Shown here piece after piece: positions 3,765 through 57,158 of a stretch of 57,158 nt of DNA. How positions within the stretch are numbered: position 1 is the stretch's first letter; each line of letters begins with the position of its first letter. The stretch spans positions 1-57,158 of the forward strand of contig FLMG01000131.1 in the NCBI GenBank assembly GCA_900088475.1. Direction: 5' to 3'. This DNA comes from Hyphochytrium catenoides. Its lineage: Eukaryota; Protista; Hyphochytriomycota. The position numbers were made by a program, and so were the translations under genes. A model generated the notes under the pieces. That model ran no database searches. It saw nothing but the letters and a program-made list of their open reading frames with translations, and was not told the origin of the DNA.

Positions 3765-5021
3765 ATGGCCGCACATAACCCTGATGATAGGCAAAAGCTT
3801 GACCAGGAGATCTACAACTTTCTCCAGAGCCACAGCGTTGACAGCTTTCTCATCCCTCAAGAAAAGCTTCTGATAGCGCCGTCCCAATGGACTGTGGACA
3901 GAGCCATGAAGGAGATGCTGAAGCGGAACATTAGCAGCGTTCCGGTCTACGAGCAAGACTATGAGATCGTCCCGCCTCTTGACTGGGAGGACGTCCCTGT
4001 CCAAGCCACATTGGGCCCACGCTACTGGTTGGGCTTCGTAGACTGCTTGGATCTGGCGGCCATGGCCCTCCAGACAGACATAACAAAGAAGGAGGAGTCG
4101 CTGTTAGCCAAGCTCTCGAGCTGGATTTCGCTCACTCCAAGGTACTACATAGGCTCTCAATAGTACTGACTTCATGAAGTGGACAGTTGCTGATGATGCT
4201 CTCCGTCTGCCCACAGCTCCAAGGAGGTTGGCCGAGTGATCAATCTCTCAAATGCAGACCCTTTCTATGGCATCAGACTGGGCAACTCCCTGTTGAGGGT
4301 GATGGAGGCCATGTCCAGGGGTGTCCATCGTGTGGCTATCGTCAGCCCGGACCCTGAATACAAGGACGTCCTACAGGTGGTGGGCGTCATCACTCAGTCG
4401 CAGCTGGTCAAGCTCCTTGCAGACAATCTATATGCATTAGGAGACCTACCCGGCTATACGATAGAGGAGCTCTTCGCAGACAAGCTGCAGACAAAGCCAA
4501 AGGTGCTGACTGCCTCAACAAAGGTTTCGGCGCGGCAAGTGCTGGAGCTGATGGTGACCAACAAACTTTCAGCCATTCCGCTGGTGGATGAGAATGAGGC
4601 TATTGTCACGAGCATGAGCGCCTCAGACATCAGGGCACTTTGCAAGCTGCCTAAAGACCAGTGGACAATCTTGGACTCCCCGGCTTTGGAGTTTATCAAC
4701 GAGATCAGGAAGATCTTGCTGCAAGAGATCCCAGATTCTTTCATGGGATCCAGACAGATTGACAGAGCTATCACTGTCAACCCTCGGGACACGGTGGGGA
4801 CAGTGCTGAACCTCATCGCGGCCTCCAGATTGCATCGTGTGTACGTCGTGGACAATAGACGACGTGTCATTGCAGTGATCTCGCTTACGGATGTGGTGGC
4901 GGCCTTGCGGCCTAAGGGAGTGGTGACGGCCTCACCTAAGCCAAAACATAAGACACTGGCGCCACAAGATGTCCAGAAGGCAGCTGAAGCACCAGTGGAT
5001 GAAGGCAAGAAGACTCAGTAA
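3765..5021 (+). CDS. CBS-domain (Bateman module) protein, SDS23/AMPK-gamma-like; 2 exons (intron 4142-4216)
   Basis: ATG at 3765 (MAAHNPDD...). A GT-AG intron joins ORF 3723-4163 to ORF 4236-5021 in frame (CCA AG|C TCC). Four CBS-like signatures: NISSVPVY..GFVDCLDL, GVHRVAIV..VGVITQSQLV, KLSAIPLVD..SMSASDIR, RLHRVYVVD..IAVISLTDVV. Ends TAA. Confidence 0.88.
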
Positions 5022-5372: not shown

Positions 5373-8300
5373 TTAAAAGCCCGGAGTAGACATACGACCG
5401 ATGCCTTCGAACCGCCGGTCACCGTCTCTACTGGGAGGATGGTAGGATAGGGATGACCTTCTACCATCACCATAGCCGTGGTCCCCTCTTGTTCCCCTGG
5501 GACCTCCATAGTACTCTGGTTCATCATCTTGGAATGACCCGCCCCGAGCCCTGGTCTGAGTAGGTGCTGCTGCCTGGTATGGCGCAGGAGCGGCCCCACC
5601 ACCTTGATAGGCTGGTGCCAAGCCGCCTGCATTTCTAATACGCTCATTGTTGGTGCGGATCGTGTTCTTTAGCCTGTTGACCCAGCCAATCATCTCTTCC
5701 CTCGTCTCCGCTGCAAGAACCAGCTTCCGCTCTTCGGAGTTGACAGCGAATCTCCATTCTGAAGATCCACTCGTCCCAGTCTTCATCTGATCAGCAGGAA
5801 GAACCTCGATGGCGTTCTCATCGAGGTTTTCAAAGTAGACCTCGCCTAAGAATGACTGTCCGGCCGCTTGCTCTTGATTCTCATAGTATCTTAGGGCGTT
5901 CTGATAGACAATGAAGTACCGGCGCTTCCAGTTCTGTCGGTGTGCTCCTTTCTTCCATCTGGAGCAAAGCAGAGCCATATTAGACATCGGCAGCAGCCAT
6001 TAAAAAGTTGCAACGAGAAGAGCTAAGCAAGGACAGTGACTTGGATAGCAAGTAGATCACCCCGAAGACGGCATAATAGCTCAAAGCTAAGGAAGAGGAA
6101 CAACAATGAAGCGCCAGCACAGCCTCCAACAGGAACTGACTCATCCTGGTAAAAGAGAGAAGGAGGAACAAAACAACGTATACTTAAGGACTAAAGAGCA
6201 ATTGCACGTACAGCCAGCCCTGGCTTGGTCCAAGCATTTGCGGTTGTATCTCTACTTGGGCCACCGCTGATCCCCTCGCACGCTCCCTTGCCAATCGAGA
6301 CGCTGTGCATGTCGCTCTTAGAGCTGCTTCCCACTGCATAAAGGCCAATGTTCGCAAAAGGAGCAGCAGGAAGGATGAGATGAGTCTACTAGCAAGCCAT
6401 CTCATAGAATCGAGACAAGAAGAGGAGAGGACGAGATGACGTTTCCCTTAAAAGACACATAGAAACTACGCCCAGCTACCTCTTGCAGGTCTTCGTTGGA
6501 GACAGCCGTGACGTAGAGAGAGCGCTCCTTTGTGGTCAACTCGAGGATGCGGAAAAATCCTGGGACGCGGCCCAACTTGAGAGATTGAGGAGGCAGAACC
6601 TTTACCGAGCGTTCATCCACCCAGCTGAGGTTAACCTAAGAACACTGTCTTAGCATAACGTACATTCAGTTGGCTAGTTTCGCTTTCTTTGGTCTCCTTC
6701 TCTCTCGCTCTCGCTCTCTCTCTTTCTCTCTCTCCTATATTCCTCGATGCCCGGTCCTGTCTTTTGATCATCCAGTTTTGCTCCGTTTGCGTGGAGGAGG
6801 GCCGTACCTCGCCCTTCTGCTTCCCTCCGGGTCTATCGAAGTACTTGAGGTAGGTAGGATAGAGTGTGAAGTGCCTCTCTTTCCAATTTTTGTTCAACGC
6901 CCCTCGCTTCCAGATCATTCCCTCCTAGTGATGCAAGCAAATGGTGTTGAGTTAGCAGACCTTGAACAAAAATTCAGCAGAAAAGAGATATATCCTATGC
7001 CGAAGAAAGAGAGACACCATTCAAGGAAGCAGCAAAGGGCAAGTAAGGGACAAAGGTAGGTCAGAAAGATAGGTTAATCTGTAAGGTAGAGTCTCACAAA
7101 CAAGTGAGAGGTGGAGGACCGATTAGCCGGCCTAAAGACAGCGAAAGAAGAAAGAGATGTCCTGAGTTGGCTACCTTAATCAACCCGTGCGGCTGGCTGA
7201 GGATAGTGTCTATATTATATGGCGTGAAGGGCTGCTGTGCTTGTTGTTGAGGAAGTGATGGTGCCCGTGCTGTCTTTGAAGGACTAGTCTCCCTTGGGGA
7301 GTCTCCTAGTCTTGCTCGTGCTTCATCTTCCATATAAGGAACTCCTGCGGTGTCACACTTCCCGCCTGCTGGAGTCCTATAAGCTCTCCCTCCAGGACGA
7401 GGCTCCGCCTCTGCCCAGTCTCTTTCCCTTCCAGAACTTCCGCTGCTGAGCAAAGAGGTCACACTGACAATGCCACTAGCTCGCCCTGATAGCTCTGAGG
7501 ATGGGGATCGCCCTACAGTTTCCCGTGAAGGAGAGAAATCGCCGTAGACATTGCCCGTTAAACTTTGCCGTTGGTATGGAGCCGAACTTAGCTTCTCTCC
7601 ACGGGTAGAAGAGGATGGGCTCATATCTTTGTGAGAGGGCGAACGGCTGTCGTAGTACCTTCCTTCAGGGCTCTGACGTCGATGAGGAGCGGAGCTTGCT
7701 CTTTCTGCATAAGTAGGAGGTACCACATGCAGTGGAGGACTAGGTGCAGCCCTCTCTCTCTTCTGCTTTGAACGCGCTATGGCGCGACTCGGCTCACCCT
7801 CACAAACGTATCGGAAGTAAAGTAGCCACTAGGGGCCGAACAGGACCAAGGGCAAAAAGAGAGGTAGAGGGAATGACGCATGGCGGTGAGGACCTGAGTC
7901 TCAGAGAGCGTAACGTGTGATACTTACGTCTTGCATTTCTTCTTGACTATCTGCCGCCAAGTACAGCTGCCGTTTGTTTCTAGTTGAGGAGATGCTGAAT
8001 AGGAATCCTGTTGGTTCTAAGGGAGCCAGACCGAGCGCCGATAGAGCGTCCCATATAAAAGACAAGTTGATCAGCTTTCCAAAGACATAAGGAGGATCAG
8101 AGCAGATATCTTGAAAACGGAGACGGAAAAGGTAGCCCAAGAGAGAGGCTGTCGATAACGCTAGGATATGATAAGGTGCTTCTCATAAATGGAGAGACCC
8201 TCGGCGAGGCAGCTAACGCAAACTTCAAGCAAGAGGAGTACCTTCTTCAATAGCATCTCCCGGGTTCTCCCTCAGTAGGTTGCAAGAATAGGCATCATCA

Positions 8301-11791: not shown

Positions 11792-14700
11792 ATGAATATC
11801 CTAAGAGCAACAGACTGTTTGTCCTCCGGAGGACGACGACACTGGCTTGCCATCGTGCTGGTTGTTCTGACTCTAAGCTTGGGCCTGCTTCTTCCTTTGT
11901 CAAGTGCCAGCTGCTGTCCTAATGATTGTTCAGGCCGAGGGCTTTGCCGACCGTCCAATCACTGTCAATGCGACTGCATCAAAGGCTTCACAGGACCTGA
12001 CTGCTCTATCCGTAAGTCCTTCTACCTTTTCTATAGAGAGCAGGGACCTTCTGTCGAACACTTTGTCTAAATTAATTGCTTCAGTGTCCTCTCTTCCTCA
12101 CGCTAGCCACTTCTTCTTTCTCTCTTTGTCCACCATGCCGACAGTGGGACTTCGAGACTGCTCATCTTTGAAGTTTGAACTATGCGTCTCCTCTCTCCTC
12201 CTCTCTCGCTTGCTCTTTCTCAGTGCTTTCCTTCTCTCTTTGGCCCCACTTACTTTCTCTCTCGTCGTGTCTCAATCATTCTCTTCAGTACATCCTCCTC
12301 GTCGTCGCTATATGTTGCCGTCTTTTCCTGATGTCTTCTTCACTTTTCTAGGCTCGTGCCCTAAAGGCGTAGCTTGGTCTGACTTTGCGTCGGCTGTCAA
12401 CAAGGCCCACCAGCGGTCTGAGTGCTCAAACCGAGGGACCTGTGACTCCTCCTCCGGGCTCTGTGTGTGTGACCCCGGCTTCACAGGGGCGGCCTGCGAA
12501 AGAAGTAGGAGAGAGAAACCTTTCTCTTCTCTATCTTCACGCCTACTATATATTCTGTTTTCCGCGCTTTTTGCTCCATATCANNNNNNNNNNNNNNNNN
12601 NNNNNNNNNNNNNNNTTTTCTCCTCTCTCTCTCTCTCTCTTCTCTATTTTCTCTTTTCTCTGTCCTCCTCTTCTGATCTTTGCATTTACCTCTCTCCCTT
12701 CCCCACCTCTTCATTTCTGATGGGGCTTGACAATCTCGCAGATGTGTGTCCAAACAGCAATTGTGGGGGCCATGGCCGATGTATGACCTTAAGAGACTTT
12801 GCTTCTCGCGGCGCTCTCTCCTACGGTCTGCCGTCTCCTGTCTCTTACAGTGTCAACTGGGATGCTGAGAAGATTCAGGGCTGTTTCTGCGACGAGGGAT
12901 ACTCCGGTCCAGGCTGCGAGCTAAGTGAGTCGACCTGCTTCTGTCATCCTGGCACCACACTGCTGCCAGTTGCCGGATTCTATGGCTTCCCTTCTAAGCC
13001 TCTCCGAGGCTTCTAACACCACGTCTGCCGTCAACCAACTTCCCTAGAGGCTTTTGGCGGCTAATACTTCTCTGCTTCTCCTACTGCTCTCACTGGTCTT
13101 CAGATTTGTTTGAGGCTATCCTTGCCTCTCTCCTCCCTTAATTACTCTTCCCTCTCACTCTCTCTTTTTCAATCTGTCTCTCTACCCGCATAAAACTTTC
13201 TCCTTCTCCGGCCGTGTTTTCAACTCATTTTAACGGAATGGTGTACTTCTATCCTGGACGATAGGGAGCTGCCCTGCAGGTGATGATCCATTGACTGGAA
13301 CGGTGGAGGATCCCCAAGGCTTGCAAGTGGATGAGATCCAGCAGATCACGTGTACAGCCACGGTAGGTCTATTAGGCGAAGGGAAAGAGAAGAAGAGAGA
13401 AAGACGCTGGCTCTGTTGTTCATTGCTTTCTTTGTGCTCTCTCTCTCGTCTCTCACTGGCTTGCTCTTTGTTGTCTCCTTGTTATCCTCCTAATAATAGG
13501 GGGGAACCTTCACGTTAAGTTTCAAAGGAGAGACAACTCCGCGGCTTCCTTGGGACTCTTCGGCGGCGATGGTGCAGGAAGCTCTGAGAGGATTGCGGAC
13601 GATGGGAAAGGTGGCGGTTGAGTTTGCTTCTTCTTCCCTCTCCGCCTGTTCTCTCACAGGGACGAGGATTGTTATCCTGTTTCTGACCGAACATGGAGAG
13701 TAAGAATCACCAAGCATCAACCCCCTTCTTTCCTTCACAATTATCTTCAAGCATCACCCCTCCTGCACGGCACCTTGAGCTGCTCTTCTCCTCTCACTAC
13801 TCTTCTTTTATCTTTGCTCTCTCTCCCTTTACCTCTCTCCTGTCCTTTGCCTCTGCTTTGCCTGCCTTCTCTAGCCATGGATTCCTGGTTCCTCTACTAG
13901 CTGCGCGTGGAGATAATAGTCTCTATAGTATTCTTGCCTAACCTGTTCTCTCCTTTCGCCTTCTTCAGGTTGCCTCTTATACTTGGGGACGACTCTGCAC
14001 TTGTCTCCTCGTCTCTCTCCGTACCTCCTGGGCTGTCCGTCCATAGGATTCAGAAAGGGACAAAAGAGAGTGTTCCCTGTGCAGGCAGAGGAACATGCGA
14101 CAGTTCTATTGTATGGACTATCTGTCTCTTTCCTTCTCATCCTTTTTGTCACTCAGGACTGATCTTCTCCTGCACTCTACGAGCCATATTGCCTTCACTT
14201 GTTACCTCTTGCAGCCAACTAGATGTTGTTGTTGCTGGTTTCCTCTCACCACCTCTCTTTCCCTTCCTTTGACCGGTCAATTGGCTCTGCTGTTAGGGTG
14301 ATTGCCAGTGCTTCGAAGGCTATTCAAGCAGTGACGGCGCAGGGAGGCCAGGAGTTAGGGGAGAATGCGGCTTCAGGAAAGAGCAAGAAGTTAGATGTCC
14401 GGTAGGAACAAGGCCATTGCTTTCCTTCCTACGACGCACGTGGTCACGACTTGATACTTGGCTTGTTCTCTTTGGATCTCCATCTCGTCTCTCTTTCGCT
14501 GTCACACCTACGTAGAACTCTTCCCCTAGCCGTCGTCGCCTAAGTTATGATTTCTGTTTGCCCGCGTTCCTTGTAAACGTATCCCTGCTTACTTCGTGTT
14601 CTCCTATGGGTTCTCAATGACCTGATGTGGCTGTCACGGCACTCTTCCACTACGATGCTGGCAGGGTCCTTCCCAAAGCCTCTGCAGTGGACACGGTGCC

Positions 14701-17534: not shown

Positions 17535-20500
17535 TTAAGCCTTCTACAGAGAAACATATAAACACTTCGTTTAGCTTCTAGGACGCGCGTGTGATATCTC
17601 TTACCTTAACTGGACTTCCGTTCTCTTCTTCCTCCTTAATCGGGCCTTCTAGCTGCTTTGCCGCTCTCTTCTTTCCTCTGGAAGGGAGAGGGGCGTTTTC
17701 CTTGTCGGACAAGGTGTGATGGCAAGAAGGAACAGGAACAGCAACCCTCCTGCCACTCCGGAGGCTAAGAGTGGAAATGGAGGAAGCGTCCGAGTCGCTC
17801 TGCTGGCACAAGTCCGCTGTGTCTTTTGTCTGAGAACGTGTGCGACGAGAGATCTTCTTACATTCGTTGTGGTCCTCGCCTTTCTCTCCGTCTTCTGGGT
17901 GCTGCTTATCCTGGCCCTTTATTTTGGACGCCTTCTTCCGCGTTCTTGGCTTCTCCTGCTGCTCTCTGTTTTCCGGCTTTGGGGCTTTCTTTGCTCTCTT
18001 CTCGACTAGAGGTCCCTCTTCTTCGTGGGTGGATATGAGTTCCTCCTCGGTGTTCTGGATGGAGTTCTTCCGTGTGCGTCTGGTTCGTAGTTTCTTTGGC
18101 TTAGCCGTTGTATTTTCTTCCTCCTCTTGGTTCTTGTCCACGCTATGAGACGATGCTCCACGTCGCCTTCTCCTCTTTTCAGGAGCCTCGTGGCTCTCCT
18201 CGTTCCCAACGGAGGCCTTGTCCTTAAAAGATAACTGTCCTTCCTCGTCTTTTACTGTGGAAGCAAGAGGAAGGGGCAATGAGCCAGGGATAAAAAAAGG
18301 CTGAGTATGAAGAGTAAGGGGACTGTGTACCATTGAGTCAGAGGCAGTTATTAATGTGGAAAGAGAAAGAGTGGGAACAGGGAGTTATGGAAGGCCATCA
18401 TAGCGAGACTACCTTTCTTTTGCCTCTTTCTTTGGCGAGACTTGTCTTTTTCACTGTCGCCCGTATCCTCGACCTGCTCTCTTTCCTTATCCTCATCTTT
18501 CTTTAACTCTTCTGTGGTCTCTCTATTACTCTCCGGGTTGCACTCTTCCAACATCGCCTCTCTAAGAGCAAGAGAATCTTGAAGATAGGCATCCAGTACG
18601 AAGCCGTAGGCAATATCTAAAGAGAACAAGAGGTTTAAGCTTGGGTTGGGGCGGAAACAGTGGGAGCAGGACGACCATCACCGGCTGCCTTCTTTATGTC
18701 GTTTGTGAACTTCTCACCTTGGTCAATGTCAGCAAGGACTGACAGTTTATCTGCAAATTTCCGTACCTCTGCTTCCTCAATAGTATCCTTAAACAGAGAG
18801 TCTAATGCCATCTCGTCCTCCACTAATCCTGCATCTCTTTCCTTGACAGCGGCACTACGATAATGACGGACGGTGGGTGAGATGAAGATGGCAGCTGAGA
18901 AGCGTCCGGCTGCTTAGGGGAGTAAGCTCAGGATGCTCTTACATTTGACCTTCTTCACTTCCATCGGCGGCTCGTTTAGAGTCCAATGCTGACTCCGTTG
19001 CAACAAAAGGCAGACTGACAACAACTTCATCTTCTCCCGTTGGCTCCTCCGATACGTGCGCTTTTTGTTCAACTTCTGCTTCAGGAACTCTTTTGAACTC
19101 CAGTGACTGGCGACGGAAGGCTTCTGGATCAACCAGATACGCAGATAGTGCTGTATCATAGGCTTCTTCCTCTGGGCGAGATAGAACGAATTTAGAGACA
19201 AGCACTGGAGCAGTGGGGAGTCAAAGGAGAAAGAGGTCACTTATAGACAGAATAGACACAGCGACAGACTCCATAGTGTGTGAGATGGCCCTACCAAGAC
19301 AGGATAAGGAAGAAGGAGACTGCCAACCTGTTTGCACTTGACCGTGCAGAGTGAGCTCCTGAGCTTGTTCTTCAATGAGCTTCTGGTCCTTTAAGACCAG
19401 CATCTTTCGCGTCTCCTGAGCGCTCTCTTGGTCTAGGGACATTAGGGGTTGAGGAGTGAGGTCACTGAGAAACCCAAAGACAGTCTCACCTGCTGCAGCC
19501 TCATCTTGTCGTAGCACCTCAGGTTCCTGCTGGTAGGCTTCCACCACGACCCTATATGACACAGCTGTTGCAGGAAGGCTATTAGGGCTCGTCTCGGACA
19601 AGGCAGCCGGGCATCATGGAAATTGCTTACGAGGGGATAACAAAGGGGCCAAAGGGAGAGAGCTAGAGGGATCATTGGAAAGAGAACCTCTTACATAAGT
19701 CGGCCTCTGTCTCAGCGCTCAGTCGCCTAGCAGCCTGTAAAACCACCTCTTGATCTGCTCTGCACTTCGTTATACACTCCGCCAACGGCGAGACCATCGC
19801 TGCGTAATGGCTCCCGTGCTCCTCTCGTCTTCTCTTTCTCGTACTGACCGCCTCCTTTATCGCTCTCGTCATGGGGCTTTCCATCGTCCTCAAAGTCTTG
19901 ACGTTTCCCAAAGAGGAACTCTGAATGTCTCTTTTGAGTGGAGAGGACAGCTTACGCAGTTGGGAATAGTGAAGGGGACGGCTGTCTACCGCCTGCTCCA
20001 CCTCCTTCTTCAAAGGAGAGGAGATTCGAGGAAGCATAGAGAAGTGTGGTTGACGGCCAGCTACGGTATCTCTTATCTCTTCCCTTACGGGAGAAGAAAC
20101 TCTTGACAAAGAGGAAAAATGTGGAGGACGGCTGTTGACAGCTTCCTCAAGCTCTCTTTTTATGGGTGAGGAGATCCTCTGGCACTGTGAAAAGTGTTGA
20201 GAACGATTGGCGGCAGTCATTGCGAGTTCCCTCTTCAAAGGAGATTCAAGCTGAGGAAGAGCGGAATGATGTGGCTTGCGGTTGCGAGCTACCTCTTTCA
20301 GGTCTCTCTGGAGCGGAGAAGAGAGATGTGGAAAGGAGACTATACGTGGTGGACGCGCGCTGGCTGCCGCTCCAAGTTCGTTCTTAAGAGGAGAAGGTAG
20401 GTGAGGAAGAGCAGAAAAGTGTGGAGGCCTGGTATGGGCGGCTGTGTGGAGCTCTTTTCTCAAGGGGCTAGGCAACCCAGGGACGGAGGAGATGTGTTGA

Positions 20501-23500
20501 GATCGTGAAGCGGTCGCGTCTCTGACTCTCCTAAGAAGTTCCTCCTTATACTCCGCGCACCATCGCATGGCGGAGGCCTGAGGGCGCTGGAACCTCTCTG
20601 CAGCAGCTCTGACAAGTTCTTCCCTTTGCCGCTGAGGAAGACGAGACATCTGCGAAAAGTGCGGCTTGGCATTCATGACATTGGCGGTATCCTTCAGCTC
20701 CTTGGTAAGCGGAGAGGAAAGTGTTGCAAGCTCTCTGAGAGGCGGTGGTCGATTGTCGGCTATGTCAGCTGCTTTGCTCTTCAGCTCCTGCTTTAGAGCT
20801 TCAGGTACAGAACCCATTCCCGCGTGCAGAGCTCGTCTCTCTGCTCTATCTAGAGCATCTTGCTGCAAATCTTTCCTCAGTGGGCTTGGCAGAGTCGGCA
20901 CCTCAGTAAGTAGTGGAGGGCGGCTGCTCTCTCTCTCTTTTCCTCGTAGTACTAGTTCGTGTCTAAGGGGAGAAAGTATGGTAGGAACTTCGCTGGCCAA
21001 GGGCACTCGAGATTCTTCTCTTTCTTTTGTCTTTCCCTTCAATTCCCGTTTTATTGGTGTCGGCAAAGCTGGCAGCTCATCATGTTGAAGCGGTCGCCTG
21101 CTCTCTCGTTCTGTTGCCTTGCTTTTTACCTCGGTCCTCACAGGAGAAGGGATAACTGGAACCTGGCTGTAGTGCAAAGGACGGGTCTCGGCTGAAGCTT
21201 TCTGGTACAACTCCGTTTTGAGGGAGGCGGACATTAAAGGAGGATCAGCCGAAGAGCTAACCCTGCGTGCTTTGGCTTTGTTTTCCAATTCTTTCTTGAT
21301 AGGGGAAGGAATGGTCAGCAACTCGTCTCTGAGAGGAGGACGGCTGGCCCCTCTGTCTCGTCCTTCTTTCTGCAGCTCCTCTTGCAACTCTTTTGGAAGA
21401 GAGGGAAGCTCCTTGTAGATGTCAGAGCGGCCAATTTCTGTCTCCCTGACTGCCTGCTTAAGCTCTTTCTTCATGGGAGTTGGCAATCTCGCACTTTCCG
21501 CATAGTGCACCGGTCTTCTCTGGTCCATCGCGGCGGCTGTCGCTACCAGTTCTTGTTTCTGCGGTGAACTCATCACAGGAGGGATGGGGATCCCAAACAG
21601 CGAAGAGTCGCTGCTGACTTCCGATCCAGTTGCTAGGCTGAATGATGATATAGGAAGCGAGGAAAGAATAGCAGTATCTGAATCTTGCTCCATTCTTCTT
21701 TCTCTCTTGTTGGCCTCTTGACAGAGTTCCTCTTTTAGTGCTGAGTCGAGAACTGGGCCCTCAGAATAGTGCTTCGGGTCCCTAGCCGCCGTTTGTTGGA
21801 GCTCGAGTCCTGGTCCTTCCGCCATCGAGCACGGGACGTCGCTGGGTCGATTGACTGTTCCTCCTGTGGAACCATGAATCTCCAGAAGCTCCTGCCGCGA
21901 TGGAGAAGAGAGAGAAGGCAGAACCGCCGAGGTCCCTGTCTCTGGGTTCTCCATGGCTCCGACTTCGTTCTCTTCTGGAAGAGGAGGAAGAACCATAGAG
22001 GGACTATCTTCTTTGTGAGCGCATTCGACTAATGTGGTCTCCTTTTCCCCAAGCAGTTCGTCCTGTTGCGCATGGTTCGGTACCAGGGCATTCTCTAGGC
22101 ACTGCTCTTCCGGTTTATTAACCGCCTGATTGATTGTTCCCACAATTCTCTCCTCGACGGACTGCTGCGTCTCTTGAATGATTTCCTGGGTTTCAGTTAC
22201 TTTCTCCTGCTGACGACAAACTTCTGGCGATTCCACACTGAGGTCGTCTAGAACAACCTTGGGGGTCTCTGCCTCTACAGACTCCTTTGACACATCAGGC
22301 ACAAGGAACGGAGAACTTGGTCCTGTTGCGCTCAAGGTTGGAATAGAAGGCAAGGAAGGCGAAGGAGAGAACCTCTCGCCAAGAATGCTGCCAGGATCCG
22401 AAGATTCATCTACCTTGTAGCGCTTTGCTGGACTCTCTTCCAGTGAGCACCCAGGTCGAGGGGACGATGATCCAAACGAAGAGGGAGACGAGAGTGCATT
22501 CTCCCTGTTCCTTTTCTCTGGAGTACCCATCGGAACGCCATTCTCCGACGCCGTGCTGTGCCGACCGTTTTGCCCCTCAGATATCTCTGTGGCCGAATAA
22601 GACTTCTCATGGAGAGCTTTCACAGGTGTTGACGCAGAGTTGATTGGGGCAGGGGCCACAGGCTGAGGAGATGGAGGAAGGGCGTTTTCTTTCTCAGACA
22701 GGAATTCATACTCCGATGGACTTTGGCTCTTTTCCTCAATTTGTGGAGAGGGGATAATCGTCTTGGAATGAGGAGCGCGGTCAGCCAGCGGTCTCCGCTG
22801 TAAGAGCGTCCTATTTCTCACTGCTGCAACCCAGTTGGTCCTCAGAGTGCTAGGAAGATCTGTCCTAGGGAAAGAACTTCTTGCGGGCATCGAGATGGTT
22901 CGGTCTTCAGCGTCGTCCGAGACCATTCCTGGGGTAGACATGGAGCGCTGCGTTGAAGATGTAGGTTCTATGTCCTTTGCGCAGTCATCTGCAGCCCAGG
23001 ATTCCTGGTGGAGAGGTTCTGGCAGCAAGAGTGGACGTGAGGGCCAAAGACATAAGATACCCGTGAAAGGAGAAAGGAGAGCAACGTTCAAGGGTCCAAG
23101 GGTATGAACTCGAGGCCAGAAAGCAAGAGTTGAAGGAGAATGTACTAGATAGGCAGAGCGCTACCAAGGGTAAGAGGTGGATCATGATTCGAGAGAGCCA
23201 AGATAAGCCAGAAGGAGCACACTTTGTGTCGTACCATACTCCCAGCGAAAGGAGCGATCTGCAATCTTGATTATGGCGCCATGAGGGACAGCAGTGGGTT
23301 TACGAAGTGCCTCATCGTTGAGCAGCGTAACATTACTCTGAGTAAGGGACTCCAGGATAACCTGGCCATCGATCACGTTAAGACTGGACGGGCTCTGTCG
23401 AGGACGGATACCACAAAAGGAGATAAACATAGAGGATAGAGATAGACTGTCTACCTTTCCCCTACGGCAGATCCGGACGCTGGCGTGTAGGCGTGAGACC

Positions 23501-23710
23501 TGCGGTAACTGGATGCGGATGTCGCAGGAGTCTTTTCTAGAAGGGGAAAAGAGAGTTAGCCGACGGCCCATTGCAGTGGGCAAGCAAGCAGTGTGATGTA
23601 GACCTGCCCAAAGTGATATCCTGGCACACTTGGAAACGGCCACCTTCCTTTCCGTCCCGCTTGATGACAATGATGGTTCCAAACGGAGCCACCTTAGACG
23701 GTCCTTCCAT
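17535..23710 (-). CDS. Large Ki-67-like protein: N-terminal FHA domain, tandem S/T-P repeat array, acidic blocks and basic C-terminal tail
   Basis: Exons 1-3 splice to MEGPSKVAPFGTIIVIKRDGKEGGRFQVCQDITLGR|KDSCDIRIQLPQVSRLHASVRICRRGK|VILESLTQSNVTLLNDEALRKPTAVPHGAIIKIADRSFRWEY, with the FHA GR, SxxH and N motifs. This is followed by the 1139-aa ORF 19672-23091 and downstream ORF-exons 19221-19601, 18939-19205, 18635-18823, 18351-18629 and 17578-18333. The last micro-exon is predicted as KA* (TAA at 17535-17537). Some internal junctions were not fully resolved. Confidence 0.8.
19760..21771 (-). repeat. Protein-level tandem repeat array (about 23 units of 25-29 aa) inside the Ki-67-like gene
   Basis: Consensus approx. 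H-[FY]-S-x(4)-[LIV]-[PS]-[ST]-P-[LIV]-[KR]-x-[ED]-[LIV]-x(3)-A..R-P-P, e.g. HFSALPHLPSPLKNELGAAASARPP and HFSMLPRISSPLKKEVEQAVDSRPL. The period is about 29 aa in the N-terminal part and 25 aa in the C-terminal part. Confidence 0.9.
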
Positions 23711-38523: not shown

Positions 38524-40615
<2,092 letters not shown>

Positions 40616-52800: not shown

Positions 52801-55800
52801 TCGCGGGTTAAGGTTTTGAATGAAGCTTCTTTTCTGCCATTGCTTCAACGTTCCTCCTCTCCATCTGTTCCTATCCCCGGTCGCACATACTCAATCTTCA
52901 TTACCAGTTGTCGTCAGCTACTTTTCACCTCTCCCTATACACTCCATCCTCCAGGGACAACTTACTTCGCTTTTTTGGGTTTCACGGTCTTCGGTTTATG
53001 CTTCGGGCAATAGAAGTTTGTTTCGTGATCAGTAAGTCCAATAGCACTCGCACAAGGATAATGGTAGCTAGCCTTGCATTCCTGGAAGAGACAAAAGGGA
53101 TGTCGCCTATAATTAGCAACTGAGCAAACGGTGCGAAAGTCCACAGTTGGATAATACAAGCAGAACCATCACAGACAAAGATACATCCTCCTTGCAAGCT
53201 ACTGACAGGAACGAAGCATCCGATTGTTGCTCCCTTTTGTCTGCAAGACTGGCACTCGAGCTGCCGCCCTCTCCGAACTTCCTTGGCGACGTTGTACCAC
53301 CGTCCTGTCTCGTTGCTGCGGAGGAGGGAGGGAAGGCGAAACTTAGTAAGGCAATTGGGGCTTTTCATTTACTTCAAACCACCCAATCACTCACCTCTTA
53401 AAGGCCTGAGGAGAACAAATTGCGCAGAGATCGTGCACCCAAGACCGCTCTCTTGTCTTGAAAGAAGGCACTCGTAAGCCGCTTTGTTGGCTTAAGGGTT
53501 CGGACACTGAGAATCTATAGCTCACCTTGCCAGAGGACGTGAAGAGCGGATGAGGGCCCAGAGCGGTGCCAGGAAGTCTGAGCATGCCATTATCATTCCC
53601 TTTGTGGCACAGAGCACAGACTAGAGGAGGCAAATCTCCTGAGGCCAAACTGGCCTCTAAGAACTTGACTTCGCCATCCACGCACACAACGTTCGAATCA
53701 AACACGTCTTCTGTTTGGTCAAAGTGTGCTCCTGTCCGCCGCCTTTTGCGTTCGGTAAGAGTGAGGAGGAGGAGCGAGACAATAAGATGATCGTCCCACG
53801 GGCCGCGTAAAGATAATCCTCTTTTACCTAGAGTCTCCATCCAATTCAATCGGAGTTGCGGGGCCCATTGATCGCAGAGAATGCCCTACGGGTGCTTTGC
53901 TCTTAGATGATCTTGATTTGGATCGTCGTCTGGTTCTATAGCGCCTAGAGTTTCTGGTCCGAATGCCTAAAAGTGACCAGTGGTTGGAACCTTGCGTGCT
54001 GTATCAATCTGAAAGAGTAGTTGTAATGACCAACCTTCTTCCGCGTCTTTGTCTTCCCCTTCATCCATATCTTCTACCTCTTCCACCGAATCAGAGTCAC
54101 TGCTGCTCGGAAAGATCCAGCCAGGAACAGCTCAAAGATTAGTGACCCTCGAGATCTCATGGGCAAGCTAAATGGAGAAAACAGTTCGAAAGTACCTTGA
54201 CCATGACCGAGGTACCATGCAATGTGACGAGGAAGAAGTAGTATCTCAAGATAGATAGATGAAGAAGGTGGAGAAGACACGCACCTTTCATAATCGGAGT
54301 CGTCGCTGAAGGACGAATCTTCGTCTTGAGGATCGTCGTCATCCTCCACGGCCGGTGGACTTGGAGATGGTGTAGGAAGCCTTTGAACGGTCATGATGTT
54401 GCTGGGAAGCACTACCGCGGGAACACTGTGTCTTGCTTCTGCCTGGTTCTCTCGGTGGGCCAAAGAGGAAGATGGAGGCTGACCAGGTGCCGTGCTGGGC
54501 TGCGTAGGAGAGACAGCCTGACTGGGAGCAGGAGTGCTTGGGCTGTCCGAATCCTCTTCCTCAACCGAAGCGACTCCCAGAAGTCTCATCTCTGTCTCAT
54601 TGGCTTGACGAAGTCGGGCCTGCCAAGGATGGTGAAAACAGGGACTAATGAGTCTGATTCAAGGTTTGTACTGCGCGGAGGACAATGTTATCACCTCATA
54701 GAGAGCAGCCGCCTCCTCAGCGGACAGCGGCCGGGCTCCAGCTCTTGCCGGGGGTTGGTACTCATATGCTTGACCCATAATATCGATAAGGGGTCCCCGA
54801 TTCATGAGGTGTGGCGGTAACTGCAGACACAGGAACAGTCACAATATGGACGCTTTAGGCAGAGTGGCATGCATGCCTCAAGATTATTAAGACTAAGGTG
54901 CTGAGTGCTAGGGGTAGAGGTGCTTAGACGGCGTTTCAAAGCTACCTGTGTGTTGCCATCCAAGACATTCATGTTCCTGTCCATGACGATGAGTTGATAG
55001 TCTGAGGCGAAGTATTGCTCGACAGGCGCCGCCCGATACTGCTCCCCTCCGCCGGTAGAGAATATTAGGAGCCTATTAGAGAGAAGCAGTAGCAGCATAG
55101 TCCTTTTAAAAAATATTTCCATGAATCAGCACCGCACAGATACTGAAAAGTCCACCCCGGGAAAGCTACCAATGGTCAACATTTGTGTCAGTCAGTGACT
55201 AGACGAACCTTCCAATGCAGTCAGTGAGCACAAACGTCGAGCCGTCTGGAGAGAAAGATCCGTCTAAGAAAGCCTTGCTCAGAACGGGTTCCGGGGGAGG
55301 AAGGTTCTCGAAGCGCTTAATCATGACGCCTGCGTAGATCATTCAGTTAGTTCTGCTTGGTTTGAGATGAGTCTCGGAACTCGTTCAACGTGGCGTACAC
55401 TCCCGGTCAAAAGGCAGAGCAGCAAAAAGTCGATGGGGAAGAGAGGTCGTCGACAAGACAATAACACTTTTTGTCTTACCTCTTTCGATGTCCCACAGAA
55501 AGCATCGACCGTCGTATCCAGCCGTCATCAATATTCTCCAGTCGCTGGGGTGCGCTGCCATGACAAACGCCTGTTTGACGTGCCCATTGAGCTTCTGCGT
55601 GTCTGTAGCTTGCAGTGTGTGTATCAGTCTCCCATTCTTTGGATTCCATATCTTGATGCTTTGATTCCAGTCCGCATGCTCATCCGTTGTCAGCGTTCGA
55701 GGAGGCGGAAAGCACTGCATGACCCATGGTAACGATAAAGAACCAGTTAGGGAACTATAAAGGCAAGATGAGTGCTCAGAAGAGTCATTGGCTGCGCTAC

Positions 55801-57158
55801 GTTTGGAGGGACAAGAGAAAAGAAGAGACTTCTCCTGGTGTGCGTGTTGTTTAAATGGTACCTGATGTGTTGCTAGTCTTCTATCGTCGTTCGTCCAAAG
55901 TACCATATCTACAGATGGAGAAACCTTCTGATGTCCTCTGGGTCCTGAGCCCAAGCTCCTGCCCATAGATCCGGTATTGCCCAGCGCGATTTTGAGCACA
56001 TGATTATTAATCTGTGCAAAGTTCTTCTTCCAGAACCAAATCCGGGCAGTGCCATCCTTCATACTGCCAGTGGCAATGCGGTCGCCCGCGTTACTGAAAA
56101 ATATATTTGTAATGCCGCTGGTGTGGCCAGACAGCTTCCCAACCAGCCGCGTCAGTCCTGTGTCCTCCTCCGCCATTCCTGGTGCTGTACTAGCGTCCGG
56201 TAGCAATGACTCTGAGCGATTAGTCAATGGCGTGGATGGCGAGGTTTTCCATATTCGTCCCACACCATCCTCTGATCCTGTTGCCAAATAGTCTCCCCGA
56301 GGGCTGACAGTGGGATCAAGTTAGAGAAAAGAACGAACGTCCATCTCCGAAGGTAGGACATACCTGAAGGACACGCACATCACTTTGGTTTTCTTATTGG
56401 TCTGTGTATTTGTGTGTGGAAGAATCAGACTCTGTGCTCGACGCGGGTTGGCGTCCAAAACCGTGGCACTTTCCCCAGACGAGTGCCCTTGGAGGTACCA
56501 GATTCGACAGGACCCGTCGTCTGACACTGAAGCGATATTCCCAAAGACCGGATCAAACTTTACGTAGTTCACGACCCTGGAAAAGCCCTAATGATGCTCT
56601 AGTTACACCTGACAAAAAATAGTGAAAGTGCTTACGCTGTATGTCCTGTAAGGACAGCCACGGGAAAACCGTTACTTAGATCCCACACCCGAATAATCTT
56701 ATCGTCAGAGCACGTGGCGAGCAGAGTGTTATCGCTGTTGACCGCGAGATCAGTAATATTGCCTTGGTGTCCTCGAAGAGTGAGCAGCAGATCGCCAGTC
56801 CGTGCAGACCAAATCTTGACGAGCCTGTATTAGCCGCCGGGGTCAGAGCCTGCATTAATTGTCTTTCCCGTGTTCATGGGGAGCTGCTTGCCAAGAAAAA
56901 TGGATCCCACACAATCCTCATTCTACTCTTCTGCGATTCATCAACTCTACGTAAGTTCAATAGTTCCATGTCCTACTTCTTCCAATGCCTCCAATAGCAC
57001 ACCCTACGGCTCACCGATCGTCAGCTCCCGTTACAACGACCTGCCCTCGCTGGTCAAAGGTACAGCAGTACGCTGACATGTGATAGTGCCCGCTCAGCAG
57101 TTTCAGACGGCGAAACCGTGAGTAGAGATGGGCCGGGGGTGACGAAGACCGGGGTATT
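49824..57158 (-). CDS. BRWD/PHIP-like WD40 + extended PHD + Tudor-like + bromodomain protein; 5' end lies beyond the window
   Basis: WD40 repeats ([75 protein letters not shown]). BRWD hallmark [19 protein letters not shown]. ePHD (CALC..WVHDLCA..CQSC..GATIGC..C..SYHYPCA..YCPKH). Tudor-like YTPQ / PDYLV / [10 protein letters not shown]. Bromodomain (FREPVP..Y..V..PIDL..I..R....YYR|..D..L...NCEKFN.PGS.I). The 3' exon structure spans an N-gap, so the end is approximate. Confidence 0.88.

Follow-up and report, generated by a model that had tools for sequence, protein, structure and literature searches.

Introduction

Ki-67 was long held to be found in vertebrates only, and the working of its repeats is still debated. 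In the human and mammalian protein, 16 tandem repeats of 122 amino acids (aa; Pfam PF08065) lie in a long disordered region that follows an N-terminal FHA domain. Phosphorylation of the human repeats drives the chromosome periphery to form, with a mitotic diblock charge pattern of 30–40 aa (PMC9106583). A preprint of June 2026 (10.64898/2026.06.18.733134) described non-vertebrate proteins of the Ki-67-like kind, among them one from the thraustochytrid Hondaea fermentalgiana, a stramenopile. The features used to recognize them were a Ki-67-type N-terminal FHA domain, disorder, lineage-specific repeats, charge reversal at Ser/Thr-Pro (S/T-P) sites, a PP1 motif, a basic isoelectric point (pI) and a low arginine-to-lysine (R/K) ratio, the latter in all homologues. 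Exceptions to the basic pI were conceded, for example an acidic Drosophila protein. The repeats listed there are 8 units of 15 aa in Ciona and 13 units of 29 aa in Xenopus Ki-67, and the density of S/T-P sites in human Ki-67 is 1 per 35 residues. Here we describe a tandem array of 25–29 aa units, most of them carrying a site of the cyclin-dependent kinase (CDK) type, encoded on the minus strand of a 57,158 nucleotide (nt) stretch of the Hyphochytrium catenoides genome (contig FLMG01000131.1, positions 1 to 57,158, called the window below). The preprint does not list this species. We consider it reasonably probable that the array forms the repeat domain of a Ki-67-like protein which H. catenoides, a fungus-like protist of the stramenopiles, encodes in a single copy, with CDK-site-capped helices following a Ki-67-type FHA domain.

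Organization of the Repeat Array

The minus-strand open reading frame (ORF) 19672–23091 is open over 1139 codons, and the tandem array fills its second half (aa 392–1095, nt 19807–21918). There are 22 units in aa 507–1095, namely 13 of 26–32 aa, seven of exactly 25 aa and two in a decaying tail, in addition to three degenerate units at the head. From the head to the tail, the array is organized as follows:

21574–21918, minus strand, aa 392–506: degenerate head with three recognizable partial units (matches of the unit hidden Markov model, HMM, at aa 392, 430 and 450)
20476–21573, minus strand: 13 units of 26–32 aa, mode 29, reading Phi-x-[ST]-P-Phi-[KR]-x-[ED]-Phi, with a predicted 16-residue helix and an R-P-P linker (unit table, alignment, AlphaFold)
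19951–20475, minus strand, aa 873–1047: seven units of exactly 25 aa, L/I-S/P-S-P-L-K-R-E-L-x-x-A-V-x-x-R-P-P-H-F-S-x-L-P-x (unit HMM, unit table)
19807–19950, minus strand, aa 1048–1095: two decaying tail units (unit HMM, unit table)

A preliminary description of this DNA had placed about 23 such units at 19760–21771; the array and the approximate number of units were found again, and the limits are corrected to those given above. The five units quoted in that description are present in frame, at aa 536, 594, 873, 948 and 1023. Its figure of about 14 full [S/T]-P-x-[K/R] motifs, the CDK-type consensus, agrees with the 14 counted in aa 507–1095; the whole array contains 15 and the whole ORF 18. 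When the residues of the ORF were shuffled, 2.8 ± 1.6 such sites were expected and none of 5000 shuffles reached the observed 18.

The reported shift of the period from 29 to 25 aa is visible in the spacing between successive S-P sites, which is 29, 29 and 29 and, further along the array, 25 seven times consecutively. In the multiple alignment, the 25-mers corresponded to 29-mers whose helix has lost its last four residues, directly before the linker. An HMM made from the eight clean units with a 25 aa spacing alone (aa 871–1070) finds the upstream units too. Seven neighboring units have the same 4 aa deletion, which speaks for a second amplification that began with a single shortened unit, and the two rounds of expansion suggested in the preliminary description are thus plausible.

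Conservation of the Units

Both rounds of expansion are ancient, and the units are old copies as judged by their divergence. On average, the 25-mers are identical at 42% of amino acids, 51% of nucleotides and 34% of third codon positions, the last value being near random. Tandem Repeats Finder detected no tandem repeat at the DNA level, and a search of Rfam with the window gave no match. Across the 22 units, several columns are nevertheless kept: S/T and P (17 units each), K/R at +3 (18), E/D (21), L/I/V (22), A/V (18) and the arginine of the linker (18). A second motif, R-P-P-H-F/Y-S, is kept as well and was absent from the preliminary description. The conservation of key columns while silent sites are saturated argues for selection on these positions, and it is the best available argument that the kept positions are functional.

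FHA Exons and Gene Model

On the same strand, upstream of the large ORF, an FHA domain appears to be encoded by three short exons. The putative gene is composed of the following segments:

23604–23710, minus strand: putative exon 1, with an ATG at 23710 and the first FHA strands, up to the G-R of the phosphothreonine pocket (read from the sequence; GT donor at 23603)
23455–23536, minus strand: putative exon 2, the FHA core with a CDIRIQLP...S-x-x-H stretch (phmmer against the PDB; splice sites read in the same way)
23235–23361, minus strand: putative exon 3, the C-terminal half of the FHA domain (Pfam FHA, E 5.5e-9; residues 55–103 of the Ki-67 FHA in the PDB)
19695–23018, minus strand: large exon of ~1107 codons in ORF 19672–23091 (acceptor 23019/23018 after a pyrimidine tract; GTAAGA donor at 19694)
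21919–23016, minus strand, aa 26–391: acidic, S/T-P-rich half of the large exon, putatively disordered, with a pI of 4.7 and 15 S/T-P sites (sequence)
17581–19564, minus strand: putative downstream exons of the same gene, first acidic and then with a basic K/R-rich tail (in-phase GT..AG pairs; boundaries and membership in the gene inferred)

All six phosphothreonine-pocket residues named in the preprint (G-R-S-H-N-N; 10.64898/2026.06.18.733134) are readable in exons 1–3. In a phmmer search of all PDB chains, exon 3 matched the human Ki-67 FHA structures 2aff and 1r21 (E 1.4e-8 for its whole ORF), and no FHA structure other than Ki-67 was matched at E ≤ 1. Exon 2 aligned solely to the same two structures, with ~60% identity over 23 residues. 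Exon 1 alone is too short and its PDB match was not significant. For exon 3, an alternative acceptor exists at 23395, which would add 11 residues.

The association of an N-terminal FHA domain with repeats is also a property of MDC1, a DNA-damage mediator in which the FHA domain is followed by Pro/Ser/Thr-rich (PST) tandem repeats and by BRCT. Five linkers of the array read H-[FY]-S-Q and could be taken for S-Q sites of ATM/ATR, which would make the H. catenoides protein MDC1-like. However, no BRCT or other Pfam domain was found in the downstream ORFs at E ≤ 1, and the search of the PDB, which holds MDC1 FHA structures (3VA4, named in the preprint), matched only Ki-67 at E ≤ 1. We have rejected this interpretation as highly improbable.

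The GT donor of exon 3 (23234) is in phase 1 and the acceptor at 23019/23018 is of matching phase, which would join the FHA domain to the large exon. It could be objected that the large ORF belongs to a gene of its own, whose repeat-protein product has an unrelated role, and that the FHA exons stand beside it by accident: the junction is deduced from the sequence, exon 3 read through meets a stop at 23182–23184, and the large ORF has an internal methionine at aa 51. We consider such a coincidence quite unlikely. The two parts are on the same strand, and the proposed donor and acceptor, 216 nt apart, agree in phase, the acceptor being preceded by a pyrimidine tract. An FHA domain followed by a long S/T-P-rich repeat region is the architecture of Ki-67 homologues, and a protein of ~125 aa with an FHA domain alone would be unusual.

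At its other end, the large exon would stop at the GTAAGA donor, 20 nt upstream of the in-frame stop of the large ORF. A CAG acceptor at 19565/19564 matches this donor in phase, and more GT..AG pairs would join acidic downstream exons. ORF 17581–18384 (minus strand) has a pI of 9.4–9.5 and contains K/R runs such as KRRRRR and KKLRTRRTRK. It is probably the last exon of the FHA-repeat gene, and its product would be analogous to a basic tail that binds chromatin.

Neither the array, nor the unit profile, nor the FHA domain has a paralogue in the organism's own genome, and the gene is single copy. We infer for the protein the order FHA domain, acidic and putatively disordered S/T-P-rich stretch, approximately 22–25 basic units, and probably more exons ending in a basic region. 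As this single-copy gene would open with a Ki-67-type FHA domain, the array is most likely the organism's version of the Ki-67 repeat domain, and the same context strengthens the idea of a role on mitotic chromosomes.

Predicted Helices in the Units

Two AlphaFold models were considered: a single-sequence model covering aa 500–1100, and an alignment-based model (A2) of three-unit segments built from six alignment rows. The single-sequence model had a mean predicted local distance difference test (pLDDT) score of 49.5 and showed many short helices and no tertiary fold. A helix begins 0–2 residues past the serine at 13 of the 17 S-P sites, and units lacking S-P show a helix start at the corresponding point as well. 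In the A2 model, three 29 aa units formed identical 16-residue helices (4–19, 33–48 and 62–77), each beginning at the proline, with a pLDDT of ~76–85 in the helices and ~53–60 in the linkers; the same three units were unstructured in the single-sequence model.

As the predicted helix begins at the proline, the Ser/Thr would be the N-cap and the proline the N1 residue. Each unit may thus be described as a CDK-type S/T-P-x-K/R site in which the Ser/Thr caps, and the proline starts, a predicted helix of 12–16 residues, followed by a Pro-rich linker that contains the R-P-P-H-F/Y-S motif. The preliminary description had proposed a site capping an amphipathic helix. The start of the predicted helix at the proline fits this proposal; the amphipathic character is half supported and moderate, the hydrophobic moment (mean 0.39) being above the 80th percentile of the helix's own shuffles in 8 of 17 helices.

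Ser/Thr at the N-cap and Pro at N1 are statistically favored in helices. The units could accordingly be constitutive, multivalent binding helices for protein, RNA or DNA, in which the S/T-P is kept for capping and its phosphorylation has no regulatory part. A helix is predicted also in the 5 of 22 units that have no S/T-P (aa 562, 621, 762, 818 and 845), and the R-P-P-H-F/Y-S motif has no kinase logic. Capping alone, however, needs no K/R at +3, which is found in 14 of the 17 S/T-P units of aa 507–1095 and in 15 of the 18 in the array; the full CDK consensus is enriched approximately 6-fold; the distant relative P0003 presented below retains T-P-L-K/R; and S/T-P sites are enriched outside the array too, with 15 observed there versus 8.4 expected. 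Taking both sides together, we hold purely constitutive helices to be doubtful.

Charge Changes Expected from Phosphorylation

The charge changes given here are arithmetic on the sequence, with full phosphorylation of S/T-P. The array has a pI of 9.9 and a net charge of +27, which would become about −9 if all S/T-P sites were phosphorylated. Each unit carries +1 to +3, and −1 to +1 with one phosphate. For the large-exon ORF from aa 40, the net charge goes from +4 to −64. The ORF of 1139 aa contains 35 S/T-P sites, i.e., 1 per 32 aa. The R/K ratio is 1.55 in the large exon, which has a pI of 7.6, and 1.64 in the array.

The change of charge is a uniform neutralization, unit by unit, unlike the 30–40 aa diblock of human Ki-67. 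The preliminary description had imagined a multisite phospho-switch acting at mitosis. This interpretation is partly supported: the site, its predicted position at the helix cap and the arithmetic of the charges fit such a switch, in agreement with the findings on the human Ki-67 repeats (PMC9106583) and with the preprint's proposal for the distant homologues (10.64898/2026.06.18.733134). We propose that, at high CDK activity, most units would be phosphorylated and that this would cancel or reverse the charge of +1 to +3 that each of them carries. A helix is stabilized by phospho-Ser at its N-terminus and by pSer-Lys(i+4) pairs, and S-P-x-K-K has that geometry. With a phosphate at the N-terminus of the helix and Lys/Arg at i+3 and i+4, the stability of the helix would probably be altered too.

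The S-[ST]-P motif occurs 13 times in the large exon, compared to 2.6 ± 1.5 in shuffles (none of 3000 reached this number), and six of the occurrences are inside the units of aa 507–1095. The consensus ligand of the Polo-box is S-pS-P. The array could then serve mainly for the docking of a Polo-like kinase: CDK would prime S-S-P into S-pS-P, to which the Polo-box would bind. Yet L-P-S-P or I-P-S-P stands in its place in half of the units, and P0003 has x-T-P with variable residues at −1. Docking as the main function seems to us very unlikely, and it would in fact be one form of the phospho-switch rather than a real alternative to it.

Relatives of the Repeat

Run exhaustively on 1.84 billion representatives, a HMMER search gave three weak matches. 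P0003 was the sole alignable relative (E 5.4e-4). P0001 and P0002 were rejected as unrelated repeat proteins with a chance likeness to S-P-L or A-P-L-K-E. P0003 is a 1530 aa ORF on a 17.8 kb contig of the ENA metagenome ERZ27293365. It contains 14 units of 28 aa reading L-x-T-P-L-[KR]-K-x-I-I-x-E-A...R-P-x-P, in register with the 29 aa units, and five C-terminal SAP DNA-binding domains. The position of the phospho-site is T-P or S-P in 12 of its 14 units; the sites are mostly T-P, whereas those of the array are mostly S-P, and its helices have a low hydrophobic moment. The unit HMM scored 16.6 bits on P0003 versus at most 7.1 bits in 200 shuffles. As significance was obtained in one direction, the kinship is plausible but modest, and the likeness could result from convergence. 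The SAP domains point to a chromatin role.

In contrast to the H. catenoides gene, the called ORF of P0003 has no FHA domain. Several ORFs of 60 aa located upstream on the P0003 contig are candidate FHA exons, and the protein has an N-terminal K-I-T-F motif resembling RVxF. A word-index protein search gave no match with the array, and P0003 itself only with the P0003 repeats. An ESM Atlas feature search with the array gave no usable match, metagenome loci scanned with the alignment of the repeats and with the FHA domain yielded no relatives, and a PDB profile search with the units returned only noise.

A bolder view would be that the 28–29 aa unit is an ancient portable module of protist chromatin proteins, associated with FHA here and with SAP in P0003, and possibly, in view of the 29 aa repeats of Xenopus, the ancestral Ki-67 repeat. 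Its helices would be phosphate-gated: a pSer at the N-cap with Lys at i+3/i+4 would act as a folding switch in addition to a charge switch. We consider this view unlikely. If the link to the SAP-domain protein is true, the unit constitutes a previously undescribed repeat family.

Comparison with Ki-67 and Ki-67-Like Proteins

The array resembles that of human Ki-67 in several respects. In both proteins, tandem repeats occupy a long region, disordered in human Ki-67 and putatively so here, after an N-terminal FHA domain, the S/T-P density is alike (1 per 35 and 1 per 32), phosphorylation would flip the net charge, and a basic C-terminal tail is probable in H. catenoides. The differences are equally clear. 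The human units measure 122 aa and those of H. catenoides 25–29 aa, with no match to the K167R profile. Human Ki-67 has many sites building charge blocks of 30–40 aa, whereas here there is one site per unit at the predicted helix N-cap. The human protein is K-rich, in contrast to the R-rich array (R/K 1.6) and to the large exon, which is near neutral overall. With Xenopus Ki-67, the period of 29 aa is equal, a comparison of period length alone. The operational definition of the non-vertebrate Ki-67-like proteins fits the H. catenoides gene as to the Ki-67-type FHA domain, the repeats (22–25 units) and the S/T-P sites with a calculated reversal of net charge. The signature of low R/K with a PP1 motif is different, R/K being high here and the PP1 match unconvincing.

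Several points weigh against the assignment to a Ki-67-like protein. With a pI of 7.6, the large exon lacks a basic character, and the R/K ratio is not low (1.55–1.64). Over the whole ORF, Pfam PF08065 (K167R) was not matched at E ≤ 1. A single stretch of the large exon fits the PP1 docking pattern [RK]-x(0,1)-[VI]-{P}-[FW], and 29% of the exon shuffles contain a match too:

20332–20346, minus strand, aa 916–920: R-I-V-S-F, the sole match to the PP1 pattern, standing in place of R-P-P-H-F-S in the unit at aa 898 (pattern search)

PP1 docking by this motif was rejected, the match being at chance level. The junctions from the FHA exons to the large exon and on to the downstream exons are drawn from splice signals and reading phase in the DNA; the locus was found in no RNA run, and three small runs with the same species label gave no match. 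The structure models are weak, the single-sequence model by its mean pLDDT of 49.5 and the better one by its origin in only six alignment rows. Finally, the reciprocal HMM was not significant, and the kinship with P0003 is supported in one direction only.

Since the FHA domain and the architecture match Ki-67 and the sequence of the unit is new, we classify the protein as Ki-67-like with a new repeat sequence family. The preliminary description had called the repeat novel. This is true of its sequence, which belongs to no Pfam family and has one distant relative, and not of the concept, since Ki-67-like repeats and the charge switch were already described. What is new is the sequence of the unit and how regular it is, together with the possibility that a SAP protein has reused it. 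Nucleolin with TPxKK and histone H1 with S/TPxK share with the array a repeated S/T-P-x-K in a basic, nucleic-acid-associated setting; their repeats are not structured units of 25–29 aa with a helix and a second kept motif.

The array is far more regular than human Ki-67, with one consensus CDK site at a defined position of the unit, approximately 20 times, and would be a simple natural test bed. It raises the question of whether phosphorylation of Ki-67-type repeats acts via net charge, charge pattern or an induced helix, and whether the chromosome-coat function is already present in stramenopiles.

Other Features of the Region

In 18560–19560 (minus strand), among the downstream exons, each of three putative exons contains the motif Y-x-x-[VA]-[VL]-x-A-Y-[QL]-x-[ED]-[PS]-x-x-[LF]-R (YRVVVEAYQQEPEVLR, YDTALSAYLVDPEAFR and YGFVLDAYLQDSLALR). 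This thrice-repeated Y-x-x-V-x-x-A-Y-x-x-[ED]-P motif has no Pfam match.

The published H. catenoides assembly is diploid, with ~2.75% single-nucleotide polymorphisms (SNPs) (PMC5795050). Compared to the assembly, DNA run X2 shows an in-frame omission of 6 bp at 22361, within a GAAGGCGAAG mini-repeat, and a TCG insertion at 19588. The contigs of this run also show an allelic difference at position 18908 of the window, and the allelic SNPs are denser in 18672–19645 than in the large exon. The allelic SNPs and the in-frame indels are consistent with coding sequence in a diploid.

Elsewhere in the genome, two intron-bearing FtsZ genes are present (G000:C1847:13007-14578 and G000:C3003:14465-15960); FtsZ is not known from animals or fungi, and these genes served to exclude such an origin of the genome. 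The window itself contains other gene fragments, namely a CBS pair (4236–5021), a PH domain (5373–5987), a teneurin-type EGF (11904–13016), a PLP enzyme of Cys/Met metabolism (38667–39299) and a WD40 propeller (55385–56287).

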